The notes beneath the pieces were generated by a model that had not been told where the DNA came from, searched no databases, and worked only from the letters and a program-made list of their open reading frames with translations. A stretch of DNA of 62,095 bases, filler included, from Choristocarpus tenellus KU-1152 (taxonomy: Eukaryota; Protista; Phaeophyceae): the NCBI GenBank assembly GCA_964200185.2. It is 11 parts of 11 records of this genome, joined end to end, with 100 filler letters (N's around TTAATTAATTAA, not from the genome) between each part and the next. Parts side by side here need not be neighbours in the genome. Positions count along the whole stretch, not along the records: positions 52,124 to 62,095 come from CAXNAD020003232.1; 10 more parts are not named here. One strand, given 5' to 3'. The first letter of the stretch is position 1. Every line of letters starts with the position of its first letter. The position numbers were made by a program, and so were the translations under genes. This document shows positions 52,124 through 62,095 of this stretch, in pieces.

Positions 52124-52201
52124 CAAATCACCCAAAAATCGCGACATTAATAAATTGCCCCCAAATGGACAGCTGCCACCCCCTCCCAGATACTTTGAGC
52201 C
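52124..52201. mobile_element. MITE family B, half copy at contig start
   Basis: caaatcacccaaaaatcgcgac...cccaaatggacagc...cccagatactttgagcc. Similar B ends abut linkers at 7404-7424, 12952-13071, 17095-17194, 21693-21720, about 44035-44072 and 51968-52023. Confidence 0.75.
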
Positions 52202-55177
52202 TCTGAAAACTAAATACCTTCCAAATTTCAAAATTTAGGAATCCCTGTCTGGTGTCTGGAGATAGTAAAATGACTCTGCATTACTAAGACTCCATGCTAC
52301 GCGTGTATAGTTTAATACGTTAAGTAAACAAAGTTGTAGTGATAGTTAAGATTCTTGTCAGCTCGTCGGCGAACAGAAAATATATTTTGCTGGATCTGGA
52401 CCACTGCCAACACCTTCCCGTATATATGGAAATCCTTACATACATTTGCTGCATGGACATATGATGCCGCCCACTCCTATAACCCAGACATCCATACCAA
52501 CACCACACACCAAGGCGACGAACCAACCATAAACCTGCAGCCTGTAAGCCTCTGGGTCACTAGGTGGAAATGACTCTGCAGTTCTTGTGATCCTTGGTGT
52601 GGAACTGGGTGCATCGATATAAATATTTATGATATCTAGATAGAGCGGTCAAAGACGTCAGGCAAGGCAAAAGCTCACTAACAGGAATTCAAAAGGTCAA
52701 AGCGGCCTTCACCTGATATCTTTGAAATGCAATTGCAGTTATTGTTGAGCAGATGGAAGAATGGTTGTACCTAATTTTCATAATTTAAAATGGGTGCGTA
52801 CTATAGTGTGATATTTTCCCCAGCCAGATCTGTAACCTGCTATCTGCGGGGGCATTTAATAGGAGGGGAAAAATCCCTCAAAGGTGAACCAGTGTGTGGG
52901 ATGGTTACATCAGATTCCTTGTCATAGTAGCAACATGTGTTTTCAATGGTCATAGTTCATCAACCACACTTTTGCCTCGGGGCCAAGAAAGCTGGCCCCC
53001 CACAACCACCGTGCATGTATGATCTGCTAAATAAAGTCTGTAGAAAAACATAAGTTTTGATGTGGTGATAATCAGGCTCCTCGTGAAACGTTGGCTGTCT
53101 TGATGGTTTGAAGGACCTCAATCCCCCAACATTAGTCGTTTTATCATGTGAAGAAACTTCAAGTGAGTGTATTGTGTACTGATTGGACTCAAAAGGCTCT
53201 TCCAATGGATATTTGCTCGCTGATCTACAGGTAGTCTAGAATATACAGAAACATCTGCCATCATCTTACATGTGTTGTATTTCCTGGTCTGGATTTGCTT
53301 CTTGTCCCTCCCACGACAACATCTGCAAAACGTATGTGGGCATTAAATATTTCTCAACGTATTGTTGTTGATGTATACTCTATGGAATTTGCAACGAATT
53401 TGGGTTAGGGTTAGGGGTTAGTGTGAGCATGTATGATTATGCCTTGCTTTCGATTACAGGAATTCGATCAAGTTTGTCTTTTCTTGTGACTTTTGCGTGA
53501 GTGAAAGTAAACGAGAGGTACCCAGAGTTGCATTTTAAAGATGCTGACAAATTTTTGCAATATTTATCTATTTTTACTAAATGCTTGAAGCATATTTTCT
53601 GAATAATAGTGTAGAATTTTTTCAAACAATACAGAAATGAACCTTCTCAAGTCAATCTTAGCAGCACTTATCGATAGATATATGGGTGAATTGCAAAATA
53701 TCTAAATACTGACTCAAAATGCGAAACGACCAAGACCTAGGTACCTCTCGTTTACTTTGACACTGTTAATTTCATCAATCCAATTGTCCAAACAGAAGGA
53801 CAAACTAATCAAGGCAAAAAAAAAATCAGTTCTAATTAAGTGCATACCCAACACATGTATCCTTCTCAACCTCCTGTCAACAAGCCCACAGGCACAATCG
53901 TTTGGTTGTCGTTTCTGGGGAAACTTCTGCGTATCGTGGTACGGCACAGGTGCACATGAAACTACACAGCATCAAGTTTTTCCATTTCAAGTCCATCACT
54001 TTTCTAAATTCCCAGGCCTGGGATTGAGAAGAATGTAGCAGAAATGGAGGCGCGAATTTAAGGAGTAGAGTTGTCCACCTATATACATACCTCGTGCTAC
54101 AGTTGGGTGTATGTTCGTGCTGAACAGCTCTCATCTACTCGATCAATGGTGAAAACGTAATACACTCACAAACTGTAGTGCATATAACATGATACTCGGG
54201 AGGACCTCAGAGAACAGTTGAGATCTGATCACACACAGTGCTTGCAACCCCAATCATTGACGGGCACAGCATTTTAGGCTTTCCGTTTCCTGTACAGGCA
54301 GACCTGTATTGTCAAGTCTATGCTTGCAATTGTGTTTGAAGATTGCTTCTCTGTGACTGTTCTCATCTACCTCAAAGCTGGTGGTCACAGCTTTGTGGTA
54401 CCCTGCTCACTTCAAGCGGCAACTTCTGCAATATGCTACACCTGAAGTGCAACGTAGGAGATAGTTCAGTAGATTATATCCGAACTATGTGTGGTGTACG
54501 GGATATTATGCATGCATGCATGAACAGTGTGCCATCTCAAGAGGGAGGGGGAGAAGGTCTGACTTGTTGGGTCACACTTCTCCAAGTAATCCCTTATGTT
54601 CATATCTCCTGTTTCTTTGGTCGTCCTGTGATAGTGAACTCTTGAAGGATGAAAACAGATGGACAAATATCGCATAAAATATTATTGTTGCAAAGTCATA
54701 CATTCATGTTTCTGGTATATCCAGAAGTAAAACTAGGTCTAAAAAAAGCAAGACTCTGCAACCATATGTATGTTCGAAGGCGAGGTTCAAATCAATGCAC
54801 CTTTTTACTTGTGCATTCCTGATGGACTACACCAATACCAGCAGAGCTGCCGCTTAAAATATATTTGCTTTGTTTAGTATCGTTATGTCCTTCACCACAG
54901 AACATATATATACTAAACATTCACGTACAAACCAATAAAAATAAACCCACAACATACATTCTTGAGGACCCATCCACAAAATTAAGAGTTGACTCAGACT
55001 TGCGCTTACTAAACGTAGCGAACGCTATACATACTCATTCTAATGCAGAAGATGTATTGCGCACTCTAATTGTGATGCGATACTCTGCCCATTTTCCAGT
55101 GTAACCTAAATATGGTATATGCCGTAAACCTAATCTCAGAGAAAAAAATATCCATACCGCAGAAAACTCTCCACCTT

Positions 55178-55231
55178 ACACACACACATACACACACACA
55201 CAAGCACACACACGCGCGCGCACGCACACAC
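55178..55231. repeat. (CA)n/(CG)n microsatellite downstream of the terpene-synthase-like gene
   Basis: Directly visible. Confidence 0.85.
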
Positions 55232-55364
55232 AAGTACCCAACGCAAGTAACTGCTGTGAATGCCCTAGATCAAACTACCCTTCATACTCGCGCTAGTGCA
55301 ACAGATAATAGACATTCGCGGCTTTACCCTGCTTGCCTGTCCAGAGGTTTCGAGTTCAAGAGGA

Positions 55365-57020
55365 TCAGTAGAAACACTCATTAAGGCGGCTGTACCATTC
55401 ACGGTCAAAGCCTCTCATGGCTTGAATTTCTTCATCCTGCTGATAAACCAAAAAACGATTCAACCACGCTTTCACTTCTGCGTTAGCCTCATCATACACT
55501 TGTTTCCAGTAGCCTTGCATGTAGACAATGGCTTCATCCGGGGTCTCGAAGTAGTGTGACACAGTCAAATGCGAGTTTTCATCCCGGTCCCGTTGAAGAT
55601 CGTAGAGGTCATTGAGGGCTGCAGCCGCACTTGCAGCTCGTTCAACGGTCCCGTCCTAGAATTCACGTCATTTTAGGATTTCGACAATGTAGGGATCAAC
55701 ACAGTGGACTCTACGGTTATAGGCAATGGAGGTTACCTATTCAGCCTCTCTACTAAGATAGTTTACGTGCATTGGGTCAGTCAATCGCAGCCTCAGTTGA
55801 AGGTGTGATTTCACACCCAATACAATTGTTCGTTGGCGATATATGGGGAAACACAAAGAAAACATTTGATACGGCAAAGCCCCAGAAAGGCTTGAGAATC
55901 TGTGCGTTGCCTTACCTTGGGCCACTCTTCCCCACACCAGACCACGCCAGCACATGGGACAAGACCGCCAGTCCACGCACGATATTCGAGGTACATCTCC
56001 AGTGTAACCTCCTTCATGGTCGCGTCCACCCCATCTGGTGTAGCAGTCATGCGGGTGTACTTGATAAAGTTGAAGATACCCCTGTCAATCTCGGCCATAA
56101 CACGGTTAGAATGGGTGCTGTAGCGAGCATCCACCTGAGCGTGCAATTTGGTAGACATTTTCGTTTTCAGTTGCTCGACATATGTACTGTACTCCAGTAC
56201 GAAGTAGAAATTATGTCTCACTTTTTGAAGAACGTGCAATATGAAAGTTTATCTCTTAGGATCATATTCATTATATACATACCTCGGCGATGAGCTTCTT
56301 GTAATGAGGCCGAGCAGAGTCTGCAATCTTCATTACTGGGCCAAACTTGGATACATCATCACGAGCGAAACGGTGGGCGTTTTCAGCGTCCTTATTGAGG
56401 TCTCCTAAGGGTTGCGATGATGCGGGATACAATAGGCAAGTTCAGGACGACACAAAGGGAATTCTGTTTGCAGCGAACTCCATGCAGCTATTCTGCTCTT
56501 ATCAGTCAAGACCAGGTGGGTATGCAGGCGGAGGAGAGTGTGTGCATGCATCAGTTAGTGGCAGCGCATCAGTTTGTTGTACTTACATCATAAAATGACG
56601 TGGAAATCCTACTATATAGTGGAAAAGGTGAAGTTCGAGAGAAAGCAATTGCATTTTCCCCGCAGCTGGCTTTCTCCCAAACTCTACTGGCATGGATGTC
56701 GTGCGGTGTTACAATTTACGATAATGTAATCACGTATCGATAGGCGGTAGACAAGTCATCCTTCTTTACAAATGCCAGCAAGGGAATGGAAACTAACCTA
56801 TAGGGTCGTCGGGACCGTGGCCTGCCCAAGGGTCATTGTCGATTATCCAGTCGAGTTTCCAGAGCAAGTATGTGTAGAGCTTGTTGATAGTTTCATCTAC
56901 GGGTGGCATGTCGTCCCGAGCCATAATCCGCGCGAAGTCGGTGCTCATTCTGTCCGGTAGTTCCTTGCCCCAAGTACTCTTGTCGGGAAGTGCCTGACAC
57001 TCCCCTGATTGTGTAGACAT
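55365..57020 (-). CDS. Complete 4-exon gene, 284 aa: putative class I terpene synthase / isoprenoid-synthase-fold enzyme (microbial-type, single alpha domain)
   Basis: Hand-spliced exons are 57020-56798, 56404-56283, 56134-55916 and 55655-55365. All three introns are GT-AG with compatible phases (1,0,0), giving 855 nt with no internal stop. Protein: MSTQSGECQALPDKSTWGKELPDRMSTDFARIMARDDMPPVDETINKLYTYLLWKLDWIIDNDPWAGHGPDDPIGDLNKDAENAHRFARDDVSKFGPVMKIADSARPHYKKLIAEVDARYSTHSNRVMAEIDRGIFNFIKYTRMTATPDGVDATMKEVTLEMYLEYRAWTGGLVPCAGVVWCGEEWPKDGTVERAASAAAALNDLYDLQRDRDENSHLTVSHYFETPDEAIVYMQGYWKQVYDEANAEVKAWLNRFLVYQQDEEIQAMRGFDREWYSRLNECFY. The motifs fall in class I terpene synthase order: Asp-rich LDWIID, TLEMYLEYRAWTGGLVPC (pyrophosphate-sensor Arg/effector region), NSE-like NDLYDLQRD. 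Confidence 0.75.
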
Positions 57021-57165
57021 GTTGGGGAAATTGACAAGGTGTAAGAGGAACAACAGACACTGCTTAGTTGGGATCTGGACGCCACTACTTTCTTGTTGTG
57101 GTGTGCGTGGAAGTTGCAGATTGCGATACGTAGTAGTGGATGAGAGTTATGAGTGGGAGTTTTTT

Positions 57166-57172
57166 TTTTATA
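57166..57172 (-). promoter_or_regulatory. Putative TATA box of the terpene-synthase-like gene
   Basis: TATAAAA on the minus strand, about 150 bp upstream of the ATG at 57020. Support is positional only. Confidence 0.3.
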
Positions 57173-58446
57173 GCATTTGGACCATTCTGATCTGATTTGT
57201 GTCGCACATCCTCTGTCTGAGTGATTATTTATGGAACCGACTACAAAATTCACCTTGTCATATCGATGAACTATGAATCGAATTTCAATATATATATGTC
57301 TTTAGTATATTGTTGTTTATCAATGAATAGTTGGAAATGTTAGTAGTAGATACAACAATTGTTGAGATGGCATGGCATTAAATCTTTCAACCCAACGAAA
57401 AAGATCTATCGGACAAATGAATTGAAAATGCGTCAATCTGTACAAAGGTATGGTAAAAGATTAGTGATAGGTGATGCTTCCAAGTAGAATAGCTTCAGAC
57501 AAAAGAAAGGAAGTATAATTTATTTTATGTAAATATTTATGTCACTGGCGATACTAATTCTGCACTACCATAGATTCCTACAGTGATCTATGTCTCTCAT
57601 TCATTGTGCATTGTTTGTGTCACTGAGTTTTTACTTTCTGTTAGATAGGGAAAGACTTATTGGGATCACCAGGGGCGGTGGGCGGCGGGCAAAAATATTA
57701 AGAACCACTTGCTCCTTTTTTTCTTCTATTTCAGTCGACTCTTCGCTTCTTCTTTCTCCAATGACTCACCGCCCATACCTCACTTTTTTTATTGTAGGAA
57801 TTGGACCTTAGTAGTTGTCCTTGTGGATCGGAGAACCTGATTGTTGAACCTTCATTGTTGTGTCCCCCATTTCCTTTTCCATTTTGTATAATTTCTTCTT
57901 TCCTATACCATATTTCTTCCATTTATCACTTTCTCTCCTTTACTACTCATCATGACAAAATCAAGTCAGGGCAGGAACTAGCCTCGACGAACCCACCTAT
58001 TTCATTCAGGAATATTCTACAACGGAAATACACTTCCGTTGGCCATGCGGTAAGAATTTGTACTGAATATGTCCTGTGAGTCTCCGCGAAAAGTTCTCAG
58101 AGACGGATCAATCCATACTATATTGCACTAATACCCTCATAAGTACAGTATTTTATAGTATTTCAAACCAAGAAATGAAACAAACCTTCATTTTACCACA
58201 ATACATTTCAAAGAAATCTGTTTTTTGATATTTTGATGTGTTCATTATAACCACTTCACAGCCACATCAAACTGTATACCTATAACAAATGGACATACAT
58301 AAATTTTTATTATGCCTTCAAACATTTCCACATGTGTCAGATGGGAGAGGAATGGACACATGTATGTCCAGAACATTTGGCGCACAAATATACAACAAAA
58401 AAAACACAATAAAATGAATCCTCAAGGTAATACACAATTTTGTAGT

Positions 58447-58740
58447 TCAACAAAGGTCGGGTTTGCGAAGTGAAGAATGATTGTAGGAATCTGTGTCTTG
58501 TGGGGGCGTAAGGAATTCAGGACTGTAGGATACGGAAATGATTGATGTCAATGAACCAGTGACACAATCCGTAGGTGTCAGTACTCCCTGAATTTTATTA
58601 GGTGCCAGGAATTGGTCAGGGCTGGCACCATAGGTTGCATATGTTTTATGGATGGGGAGAAAGCCTGCAAAACCACCACGGACAAGCTGGCCCTGGAGAA
58701 GAGTAAGTTCGCCCTCTCTATTGCTATTTAGTGCGGTACC
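58447..58740 (-). CDS. Possible terminal exon of an unidentified gene upstream of the terpene-synthase-like gene
   Basis: ttccgactag| acceptor followed by about 97 open codons (GTALNSNREGELTLLQGQLVRGGFAGFLP...PDLC*). No family recognised. Confidence 0.25.
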   Translation of the reverse strand, partial: GTALNSNREGELTLLQGQLVRGGFAGFLPIHKTYATYGASPDQFLAPNKIQGVLTPTDCVTGSLTSIISVSYSPEFLTPPQDTDSYNHSSLRKPDLC

Positions 58741-61700
58741 TAGTCGGAAGTGCAGTAACACCTGGTTAGTGAGTAGCTAGAGTTGGTAAATTAGTAATGC
58801 TCAATCCCTGTATTGAAACAAAAACATAAAAGTGGGGGAAAGACTGAATAGTGATGGCAGGGGTTCATTGCGGTCCGTCACTATCAAAGGCCTAGGGTCT
58901 GAGTCCCTCGACTGGAGGATAACTCTTCTGAATTTCTACTGTAGGAGGGTAAAAAGTAAGATTAAGTGAGAGTGAGCAGTTGTCGAGCGTCCAAGTTATG
59001 GGCTTATGAGAAATGCAAAGAAAAGTTTGAGATGATCTGAACACAACTAGTAATATTACAGGCGACGAGTAGGTTGTGACCCATTGTTTGAGCCAGGTAA
59101 CACCCTGCCTAGCTCTGATTTTGGCAAATATTGATATACCACTCGTATAGAACCACCAACGCAATGAGTCGTGCAACTGGATAAGTGATACATGTGGCAT
59201 CCCAATATTTGACAAGGTCCATACTGCACAAGATATATATATATATATATATATAGGGCGGCAATGTAATTTATTGTAGTCCAAGAGATAGTGAGAGAAG
59301 TAGCAAATAGTGAAATGTGTAATACTTCTGACCACAGACAGGTGGGGATAGGTAAGGGTCCAGCTAGGTTCCAGAGAAAAGTATAGATTAAAATAATACA
59401 ATAATGTGTATTTGTGGTAATGTTGCAAGAGACACAGACAACACCTCGTCATGTGATTGGTCTTGGAAAGTGAAAAGTGCAAGGGTACGGAGCATAACCA
59501 GGCATACCATGATGCCGTATCTAAATAAATGTAGAACATCCAACTTTGTCGAGAAGTCCTTAGGACACTAAGACACTGAAAATGACTCCAGCACACAGGG
59601 CCGACAGATATCCAGTGGAACCCAGATCTTACATGTGTTCAGACAACATTATTTGTACACGATATTTTCTTTGGTATTATTTGTACATGGACATCGATGA
59701 TTGATAAGCACACAATATTAGTTTGTGATGCATGATGCAATGATATAGTTGAACATGTTGAACATATTTTCATGGGGAAAGAAGCAACATATAACTTGCT
59801 CGGGCCCATGGTCAATTCAAAGATAATGAGAGAGAGAAATAATGCATCTACAATGTATTTCTCGAAAAGCAGAAAATATGTGGAAAAGCAACAAGTGTAG
59901 AAAAATATAAGAATTGTAGAGAGCTTCAGACAATAAACAAAAATGAAACAAAACAAAACGAAGAAATTTGAATACAGCAAGAAAGAATGTCCATGTAGGT
60001 GCATCAAGTATGCACCAGCGTCAACATCAAGGCACAACAATGCAACCCCTCCACTCATTCCAAAAAGAAAACAAGTAAAAAAACAACAACGGAGAAGATG
60101 AAAAAATGATGGAGAAAAACGCATCCATAAGACCATATCAGACTGCACACTCCAACACCAGTATCAAGGCGGTGTGGCCTGAACAATCTCGGTGCACCAT
60201 ATCATTCATCAAATAAGTTCTTGACTCCTGTGACTCCTGTCACACACACCGTTTGCACTGCCCGAGGTTAGTTGGTGAACACGGAAGGCTTTGTTGTCAA
60301 TCTGCTCCTCCTGAATTAGTTTGCTGCGGCCTATCTTGTTGTGATGGAATGCAGACGCTCAATCAATGGAAATTTTGTCAGGAATGAACTGAGTTAATTG
60401 GTGTGTAGTCCTCAGTCAGAGGTGGACTGAACAACATGTCCTGTCGTTGTTCGAGCAGCATCTCCCTCATTTCTGGACCTTGCTTTCCGCTATTGGGTGT
60501 GCAAATCAACTTGGAAGTTGAACCAACGCTGATACGATGCGATGGTCCAGTTTAAGCTAAGATGCACTGTCATGTTTCAAACAAGACGTTAGTCATGTTG
60601 AGAAATGATTATGTTTGGTAAGTGTAATGGTATCCCCCCCATTGGGATCCGTGCAGGTGTATGACCCTATTATTGTCCGTATTGGTCAAAAACGGACGCT
60701 GGCACCCCCCCCCAGATACTTTGACCCTATTTTGTCGAGCAACTGAAAATGCATTGAAGAGCGAAGTTTATTAATATCTGCAAAGTTGATCTGCCACATC
60801 AAACAGTAATATATTTCGATTTCACAATAGGATAGTCTAAGAACGCACCTACCGTGCCTAGTATTGTGAAATGCCACAATTCCAATAATTTAAGAATATT
60901 TGATATCGTAGTAGAAACATTTTGGTTCCCCAACGAGTTGATGATTACATAGCACTTGATATTCACGTGTTCACACTCAGCCCCTTGTGTGCCCATGCGC
61001 GCATGCTTCATTTGAATTGAGGTGATCCAAATATGTTTTTAGTCAATTAATTACATGCTACGTAGTAATAATCTAAACTCACAACACCAAACCTGTTCTA
61101 ATCCCCTCACCCCTCACCCTTCTTTCCAGCACAAATATTGGCACCCAGAAGGATTAACAAATAAAGGCCAACGTGATATACTGTCATGATGTGCAGTACA
61201 GGTGTGACCATACTCCCTCCTCTGAGGGTTGGGGAGGTGGTTTCACTTAAACAAGGAAGACCACCACTGCACTCAGCTTGGTTGGCATGCATATAGCATT
61301 GTCTCTTAACCGCCAAAAAAACGTGGGAGACCCCAAAACGAGGTCGGCAAGGCTTCATTCGTAAGGGACCCTGAAGGGGGTCCAGCACAAGGTTTAAGAG
61401 AGGACATAGTCCAAGGAGGAGTGGGACGGGGCAGTTTAACCAATCGTAGCGTAATAACAGTTAGTATCAGTACGTAGAGTGTAGTAGTGGTACGGCGTAG
61501 TAGTGTAACTACAAATATTGTACTCAGTACAACATTGTAGTAGTAGTAACATTGTACAATTTGGAGCATCTGACCACTGGTTGGGTAGTCCCCACAAAAA
61601 GTCAAAAATAAAAGCAATCAATATAGATCTGATCAAGGGAATTAGAACACGAAACAAGTAATAAAGGAAAAAAAAATATATATATATATATATTGTAAAT

Positions 61701-62095
61701 CCAGTCACTTCTTCAGTTCCCATCGATTCATTCTGACCAAACACGTATCCACAATGCGACTTCTATATGATCAAAGATTATAGTAGGAAAGATGTGAGGT
61801 ACGCAAAATATTTTACTCGTTTTGTTTATTATGGTTATCTTTGGCTATTTACTTTGAGAATATCGAGAGTTCGAATACTTTCCACGCTAGACCTTTTTAA
61901 TGTAAAACTTGTTTCGATTTCGATTATCGAAACTTCGTCGACCCAAATCAGTATTTGGTATAATGTTGATTATACTGTTGCGAACAAGTCTAGGCGTACC
62001 AATATTCTCTTGAACACCAATTTACGAGGTATAAAGTAGGTACCCCGATTTTGTTCACCCATGGGCATGCCCGAAAAAAGCGGTACAGAATTGAT

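Follow-up and report, generated by a model that had tools for sequence, protein, structure and literature searches.

We examined a gene in an assembly deposited as the brown alga Choristocarpus tenellus KU-1152 (GCA_964200185.2). The window, that is, the whole stretch of DNA that was analysed, comprises 62,095 nucleotides (filler included) and joins 11 parts of 11 records of this assembly. The gene lies on the minus strand within the piece that spans positions 52124-62095, which derives from record CAXNAD020003232.1. A first-pass annotation, made from the sequence of the window, had proposed that four exons at this place splice into an intact, microbial-type terpene-synthase-like protein carrying the three motif regions of single-domain class I cyclases. 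Our analysis indicates that the gene most likely represents a rare eukaryotic offshoot of the class I terpene-synthase fold that bears introns, is invisible to hidden Markov model (HMM) searches and has altered metal-binding motifs.

A four-exon gene on the minus strand

The exon model was checked by reading the minus strand from 57100 to 55300 by hand and by translating each exon (Table 1). Hand reading, translation and arithmetic all confirmed the four exons, the canonical GT-AG junctions and the intact frame of 284 amino acids (aa) that the first-pass annotation had described. Together the exons amount to 855 nt, or 284 codons plus TGA, separated by three GT-AG introns, and the 855-nt coding sequence is free of frameshifts and stops. 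The start codon at 57020 is the first ATG downstream of an in-frame TAA at 57149-57147. The codon split between exons 1 and 2 reads GGA, and the donors of exons 2 and 3 read GAG/GTATGT and AAG/GTAAGG (the slash marking the end of the exon). Guanine-plus-cytosine (GC) content is 49-55% in the exons against 35-46% in the introns, and each of the three introns holds stops in all three frames.

Exon 2 was predicted from its open frame, exon-like GC content and consensus splice sites; no counterpart was detectable in P0002, the longest homologue described below. A direct splice from exon 1 to exon 3 was ruled out, there being no phase-compatible acceptor, and an exon like exon 2 is therefore required. 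We hold with high confidence that the gene is real, intact, intron-bearing and eukaryotic, and its sequence suggests that it is probably functional.

A 173-aa open reading frame (ORF) on the plus strand (55772-56293) overlaps exon 3 and intron 2 in antisense; it could be assigned to no family and most likely just mirrors the gene on the minus strand. An (AC)27 microsatellite occupies 55178-55232, 133 nt past the stop codon, in the probable 3' region of the gene.

Table 1. Exons, introns and motifs of the gene, in positions of the window
Feature	Position	Strand	Description
Exon 1	56798..57020	-	ATG start; 74 codons and first base of split Gly codon
Intron 1	56405..56797	-	393 nt; GTTAGT...CCTTAG; phase 1; donor GT at 56797-56796
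Exon 2	56283..56404	-	122 nt; 40 full codons and 2 nt of split codon
Intron 2	56135..56282	-	148 nt; GTATGT...GCTCAG; phase 0
Exon 3	55916..56134	-	73 codons
Intron 3	55656..55915	-	260 nt; GTAAGG...TTCTAG; phase 0
Exon 4	55365..55655	-	96 codons and TGA; most conserved part of the family
Asp-rich helix motif LDWIIDND	56832..56855	-	D57, D61, N62 and D63 of the model
Candidate sensor motif YLEYRAWTGGLVPC	55952..55993	-	candidate diphosphate-sensor Arg and effector Gly at helix break
NSE-like motif NDLYDLQRD	55587..55613	-	family consensus [NH]DLYDxx[RK]D
C-terminal Arg/aromatic motif RGFDREWY	55392..55415	-	candidate counterpart of the RY pair

A very small family with a shared intron position

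Searches for relatives were run with the exons singly, and questions that concern the full-length protein were put to a natural homologue, P0002. When exon 4 was searched by phmmer against 1.84 billion representative proteins, only two true matches were returned: P0001, a protein of 94 aa that is 52% identical to exon 4 (E 4e-27), and P0002, of 320 aa and 35% identical (E 6e-11). Two other matches, P0003 and P0004, were rejected as repeat proteins that had been matched through compositional bias. Later searches added P0005, an exon-4 fragment retrieved via alignment A3, and P0006. The homologue search with P0002 recovered itself alone, and the search with exon 1 gave no match. Across some 15 billion proteins, the family is represented by about five known members.

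P0002 is encoded by an uninterrupted, intronless ORF on a 1336-bp JGI contig (JGI 3300067032). In a tblastn search of the piece with P0002, the three best matches were exons 1, 3 and 4 in colinear order, residues 43-59 of exon 1 matching residues 116-132 of P0002 and residues 45-61 of exon 3 matching residues 197-214. Between the first motif and the sensor Arg (P0002 residues 136-196, the place of exon 2), the window model exceeds P0002 by about 36 residues. Residues 1-95 of P0002 form a low-complexity N-terminus that has no counterpart in the window and may be upstream read-through or a targeting peptide.

P0001, P0005 and P0006 lie on short genomic contigs (L001, L002 and L003), which come from three sequencing runs, among SRR23272294, SRR23287131 and SRR32583815. 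On all three, similarity to exon 4 begins at its first codon, DG(T/Q)VE, right after an AG with a pyrimidine-rich run, and the position of intron 3 is therefore common to four genomes. The nucleotide alignment of L001 with L003 is confined to the exon, with 86% identity and a ratio of nonsynonymous to synonymous substitution (dN/dS) of 0.09. Judged by this comparison of sequences, the family is under strong purifying selection. Alignment A6 has 21 family-invariant residues within exon 4, and the window copy retains every one of them.

On L001 (SRR23272294), positions 1-30 are a (CTA)n microsatellite, and the intron upstream of the conserved exon exceeds 300 nt, so that the neighbouring exon falls off the contig.

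Queried with the C-terminal alignment, neither the JGI metagenome contigs nor 185,579 prokaryotic species genomes nor IMG/VR yielded a confirmed relative. The horizontal transfer that the first-pass annotation had put forward thus has no candidate donor, since no metagenomic, prokaryotic or viral relative was found.

Motifs and predicted fold

The three motif strings that the first-pass annotation had listed, LDWIIDND, YLEYRAWTGGLVPC and NDLYDLQRD, were all found, and in the order it gave. The counterpart of LDWIIDND in P0002 is LDQIVDDMLLDDD; P0002 has VDDMLLDDD, which can be read as DDxxxD, with D135 at the position of N62 in the window protein. Within the sensor region, YLEYRAWTGG aligns weakly on YIEMRRKVGG of geosmin synthases (hhalign, E 0.2).

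For the NSE-like string, a reference set of 13 non-redundant geosmin-synthase N domains was fetched by motif pattern, one of which was verified as Terpene_syn_C_2 at 1.9e-47. In hhalign, the C-terminal family profile placed NDLYDxxRD exactly on NDLFSYQRE of these 13 domains, with an alignment score of 24.7 against 13.9 +/- 2.7 (maximum 21.4) for shuffles, and none of 150 column shuffles reached this score. NDLYDLQRD is invariant in alignments A2 and A6 and is identical to NDLFSYQRE at five of nine positions (N, D, L, Q and R, including the conserved basic residue), with Tyr for Phe. The alignment lends moderate support to NDLYDLQRD being a variant at the place of the NSE motif, rather than the NSE motif proper.

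At the C-terminus, R81, G82, D84 and Y88 of RGFDREWY (exon 4 numbering) are invariant in the family alignments, and TTRGYD of P0002 was placed near SSRY of geosmin synthases by a low-confidence hhalign alignment. The distance from the first Asp to the Asn of the NSE-like motif is 142 residues, compared with 143-144 in 106 geosmin-synthase domains. When P0002 and exons 1, 2 and 3 were compared singly with geosmin-synthase domains by hhalign, the results were weak or null; the MAFFT alignments A4 and A5 were set aside because exon 1 and 3 fragments had been misplaced in them. Overall, the proposed equivalences between the motifs of this family and those of class I enzymes have moderate support.

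The nearest ESM-atlas clusters of exon 4 and, independently, of P0002 residues 95-320 were TRI5/Terpene_syn_C_2, with neighbour scores of 0.90-0.92 and, for the P0002 rows scoring at least 0.90, 174-186 shared features. A third of shuffled proteins also gained ten concordant language-model matches in a calibration, and these neighbours are taken as a lead, not as proof.

P0002 residues 90-320 were then modelled with AlphaFold2, the alignment rows being window exons 1, 3 and 4 and P0001. This model (model 1) had a mean predicted local distance difference test score (pLDDT) of 63 and a predicted template-modelling score (pTM) of 0.61. In a Foldseek search of the PDB, its best 50 rows were all terpene synthases or dehydrosqualene synthase, with probabilities up to 0.97. 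The best 50 rows of an exhaustive VIA search (48,161 cluster representatives) were likewise all class I terpene-synthase-fold proteins, beginning with selinadiene synthase, which aligned over 221 of 231 residues at Z 13.8 and a root-mean-square deviation of 3.5, and reaching Z 10.4 at rank 50; other rows included an Orpheovirus enzyme (Z 13.7), the class IB enzyme BalTS (Z 12.5) and DabA (Z 10.6). Searching a viral structure library gave terpene-synthase-like proteins of pithovirus, cedratvirus and orpheovirus as the best rows, and an atlas fold search gave nothing relevant (template-modelling score, TM, below 0.5).

In model 1, the Asp pair equivalent to that of LDWIIDND is at the C-terminal end of helix 27-45, the equivalent of the sensor Arg is in helix 108-118 with the Gly-Gly in the break before helix 122-128, and the NSE-like motif ends the next long helix. 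As modelled, this layout is the layout of class I enzymes. On the strength of the model and its structural matches, a terpene-synthase fold is likely. We put at about 60% the probability that the gene product belongs to a very small unnamed family that has diverged far from other members of the class I (microbial-type) terpene-synthase alpha fold. The 284-aa product is predicted to be cytosolic and all-helical.

Competing explanations, known relatives and significance

Several observations weigh against this assignment. In the window, LDWIIDND presents D-N-D and departs from the canonical DDxx(D/E), and the earlier reading of LDWIID as a DDxxD motif did not hold. In NDLYDLQRD, the Ser/Thr and the Glu of the canonical (N/D)Dxx(S/T)xxxE have both given way to Asp, so that the earlier NSE/DTE assignment was upheld in its place, by an alignment scoring above 150 shuffles, and not in its residues. 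The sensor Arg stands 36 residues from the NSE-like Asn (30 in P0002) compared with 45-46 in geosmin synthases, and the NSE-like motif stands 66 residues from the C-terminal Arg compared with 96, which is 30 shorter. The hhalign probability was just 8%, and a permissive family-level alignment, regarded as unreliable, shifted the register of the N-terminal half. The HMM check for Terpene_syn_C_2 and TRI5 that the first-pass annotation had called for was negative: Pfam gave no family for any exon (E up to 10) or for full-length P0002 (E up to 1), and NCBIfam gave none for the exons or P0002; a control geosmin-synthase domain scored 1.9e-47 to Terpene_syn_C_2. Against PDB sequences, phmmer or hmmsearch returned chance rows alone for exon 3, for exon 4 and for the family alignment.

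The structural evidence has its own counterweights. Foldseek E-values for model 1 were 0.1-0.8 with TM scores of 0.4-0.5, and a Z near 14 is attainable by unrelated helical bundles. A second model, computed without the window exon 1 and 3 rows (model 2), was poor (pTM 0.48, with pLDDT below 50 for residues 46-130), and its structure search yielded helical hairpins only and no terpene synthase. Both models represent the homologue P0002, about 35% identical to the window protein and about 36 residues shorter in mid-protein. The fold call thus depends on a single model, made of a homologue with 35% identity, since model 2 finds no terpene synthase; the proposed AlphaFold and Foldseek check, made here on P0002, was borne out by the best 50 rows of model 1 and not by model 2. 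For the likeness to terpene synthases as a whole, the language-model neighbours, one AlphaFold model with its structure searches and the NSE alignment above shuffles speak in favour, and the missing HMM match speaks against.

With the window exon 1 and 3 rows added, the pTM of the P0002 model rose from 0.48 to 0.61, and a non-compact model became a terpene-synthase-like bundle.

One alternative is that the gene is real and conserved and that its helical product is unrelated to isoprenoid enzymes and serves some other function, with a generic alpha-bundle model and a few short acidic motifs producing the likeness. Such an explanation accords with the want of any HMM or sequence link to terpene synthases, with the hairpin matches of model 2 and the empty atlas fold search, with the chance Z of 14 and the concordant matches of a third of shuffles, and with the ambiguous hhalign register. 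It is nevertheless unlikely, given that the best 50 rows in two different structure searches all come from a single fold family, drawn from about 48,000 clusters, that two separate sequences share language-model neighbours with at least 174 shared features in rows scoring at least 0.90, that the NSE-like motif matches NDLFSYQRE at five of nine positions and above all shuffles, and that a sensor-like YxExRxxxGG occurs in the right order. A product with the terpene-synthase fold that is not a cyclase, being instead a prenyl transferase like DabA and KabA or a catalytically dead binding protein with a degenerate first Asp motif (DND), appears distinctly less probable still. DabA and KabA, the N-prenyltransferases of diatoms and red algae, are algal enzymes that have the terpene-cyclase fold and have lost DDxxD. 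In DabA, NDxxA occupies the place of DDxxD, and with this loss goes an altered reaction in which the prenyl group passes to an amine and is not cyclised (bioRxiv 10.1101/2020.03.31.014811); its structure (6vkz) is among the matches of model 1, and the window has N62 where P0002 has D135. Yet DabA keeps a canonical NSE motif, which is altered in this family, and carries an additional helical bundle at the N- and C-termini together with an inserted beta-hairpin (bioRxiv 10.1101/2020.03.31.014811), for which a protein of 284 aa has no room. No sequence similarity to DabA was seen at E up to 10, and its Z of 10.6 lies below those of canonical bacterial synthases (Z 12-13.8). On these grounds membership of the DabA/KabA group was rejected, and strong purifying selection on the acidic motif, as estimated from the sequences, speaks against a dead enzyme.

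That the gene is non-functional here, being either ORFs strung together by chance or a copy that died recently and whose frame is still open, is highly improbable. Exon 2 is without homology support and the 10-kb piece contains no other recognisable gene; against this, three exons match P0002 in order, three other genomes share the intron position, exon 4 has lost none of its family-invariant residues, and 855 nt run free of frameshift or stop with a contrast in GC content between exons and introns.

The reading as a diverged class I terpene synthase can be set beside several known systems. With the microbial-type class I synthases (selinadiene synthase 4okm, pentalenene synthase 1ps1 and the geosmin-synthase N domain), which provide the best structural matches of the family model, the family would share a single all-helical domain of about 280-340 aa and the order of elements: first an acidic helix end, next the sensor-like YxExRxxxGG, which the model places at a helix break, then ND..x..(R/K)x, and last a candidate Arg/aromatic pair near the C-terminus. 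It differs from them in having LDxI(I/V)D(N/D) for DDxxD, [NH]DxxDxxxD for NSE and RG(F/Y) for RY, in the lack of an HMM match, in segments after the sensor Arg that are 10 and 30 residues shorter, and in being eukaryotic with conserved introns. The giant-virus terpene synthases (Orpheovirus 8jw3, and those of pithovirus and cedratvirus) are similarly small, minimal class I domains of 275-305 aa; 8jw3 was the second-best PDB match (Z 13.7), and giant-virus homologues were the best in the viral library (TM 0.53). Their E-values were not significant (0.26-2.3), no IMG/VR contig yielded a confirmed relative, and the present family, unlike them, has conserved spliceosomal introns.

Class IB enzymes (BalTS 5yo8 and BsuTS/YtpB) have a class I fold in which both metal motifs are rewritten as all-Asp, DYLDNLxD and DY(F,L,W)IDxxED, and were missed by ordinary searches (PMC5939612). 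Among the structural matches of model 1, 5yo8 (Z 12.5) gave the longest alignment (222 residues, tied with 29mu) and the top identity in the list (16%). The class IB enzymes are bacterial and about 350 aa long. Membership of class IB was rejected: neither motif nor the Asp spacing was present in the exon translations or P0002, and no sequence match to 5yo8 was found at E up to 10. Because class IB and DabA both show it, a rewritten metal site has precedent in the terpene-synthase fold; this family falls outside the motif definition of either.

If the product is indeed a minimal class I alpha-domain enzyme, it would bind a prenyl diphosphate at the mouth of a helical pocket. On one side, the diphosphate would be held via Mg2+ by the Asp-rich helix end (D57, D61 and D63 of LDWIIDND), and on the other side by the all-acidic NSE variant (N203, D207 and D211 of NDLYDLQRD), with the basic residues R167 (in YLEYRAWTGG), R210 and R269 (in RGFD) possibly helping to hold it. 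Ionisation of the diphosphate would give an allylic cation, which might be cyclised, quenched or transferred. We infer metal binding, substrate and product purely by analogy with class I enzymes, and by the same analogy there is an even chance that the protein is an active prenyl-diphosphate-ionising enzyme. The further proposal is tentative and rather doubtful, namely that it is an active enzyme in which a diphosphate-Mg site formed by LDxI(I/V)D(N/D) and [NH]DLYDxx[RK]D replaces DDxxD and NSE/DTE, and that it is the source of terpenoids in some lineage of algae or protists from which no terpene synthase is yet known.

Within 52124-62095, none of 30 other ORFs of at least 55 aa had a Pfam family, no Rfam match was obtained, and no biosynthetic neighbour genes were visible. 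Near both ends of the piece lies a 31-nt direct repeat (52172-52202 and 60698-60728; 90% identical, 8.5 kb apart), which may belong to a dispersed element. A 25-nt inverted repeat occupies 53501-53525 and 53737-53761; its arms, 92% complementary, are separated by 211 nt, and it looks like a small hairpin or an element like a miniature inverted-repeat transposable element (MITE).

Genome surveys usually recognise terpene synthases by HMM matches and by their DDxxD and NSE/DTE motifs. Where a family has retained the fold but rewritten its motifs, as have class IB and DabA, it was found late and brought new chemistry. To our knowledge, the terpene synthases described so far include none from brown algae, and a literature search on brown-algal terpene synthases or cyclases, or on a non-canonical eukaryotic family of them, found nothing relevant. 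Dictyotales produce many diterpenes. A brown-algal host, if right, would raise the value of the finding. Should the protein prove not to be an isoprenoid enzyme, it would still represent a conserved orphan family that is worth a structure. If active, it would broaden the range of sequences that can be recognised as class I enzymes and would be a concrete candidate for terpenoid biosynthesis in the host lineage.

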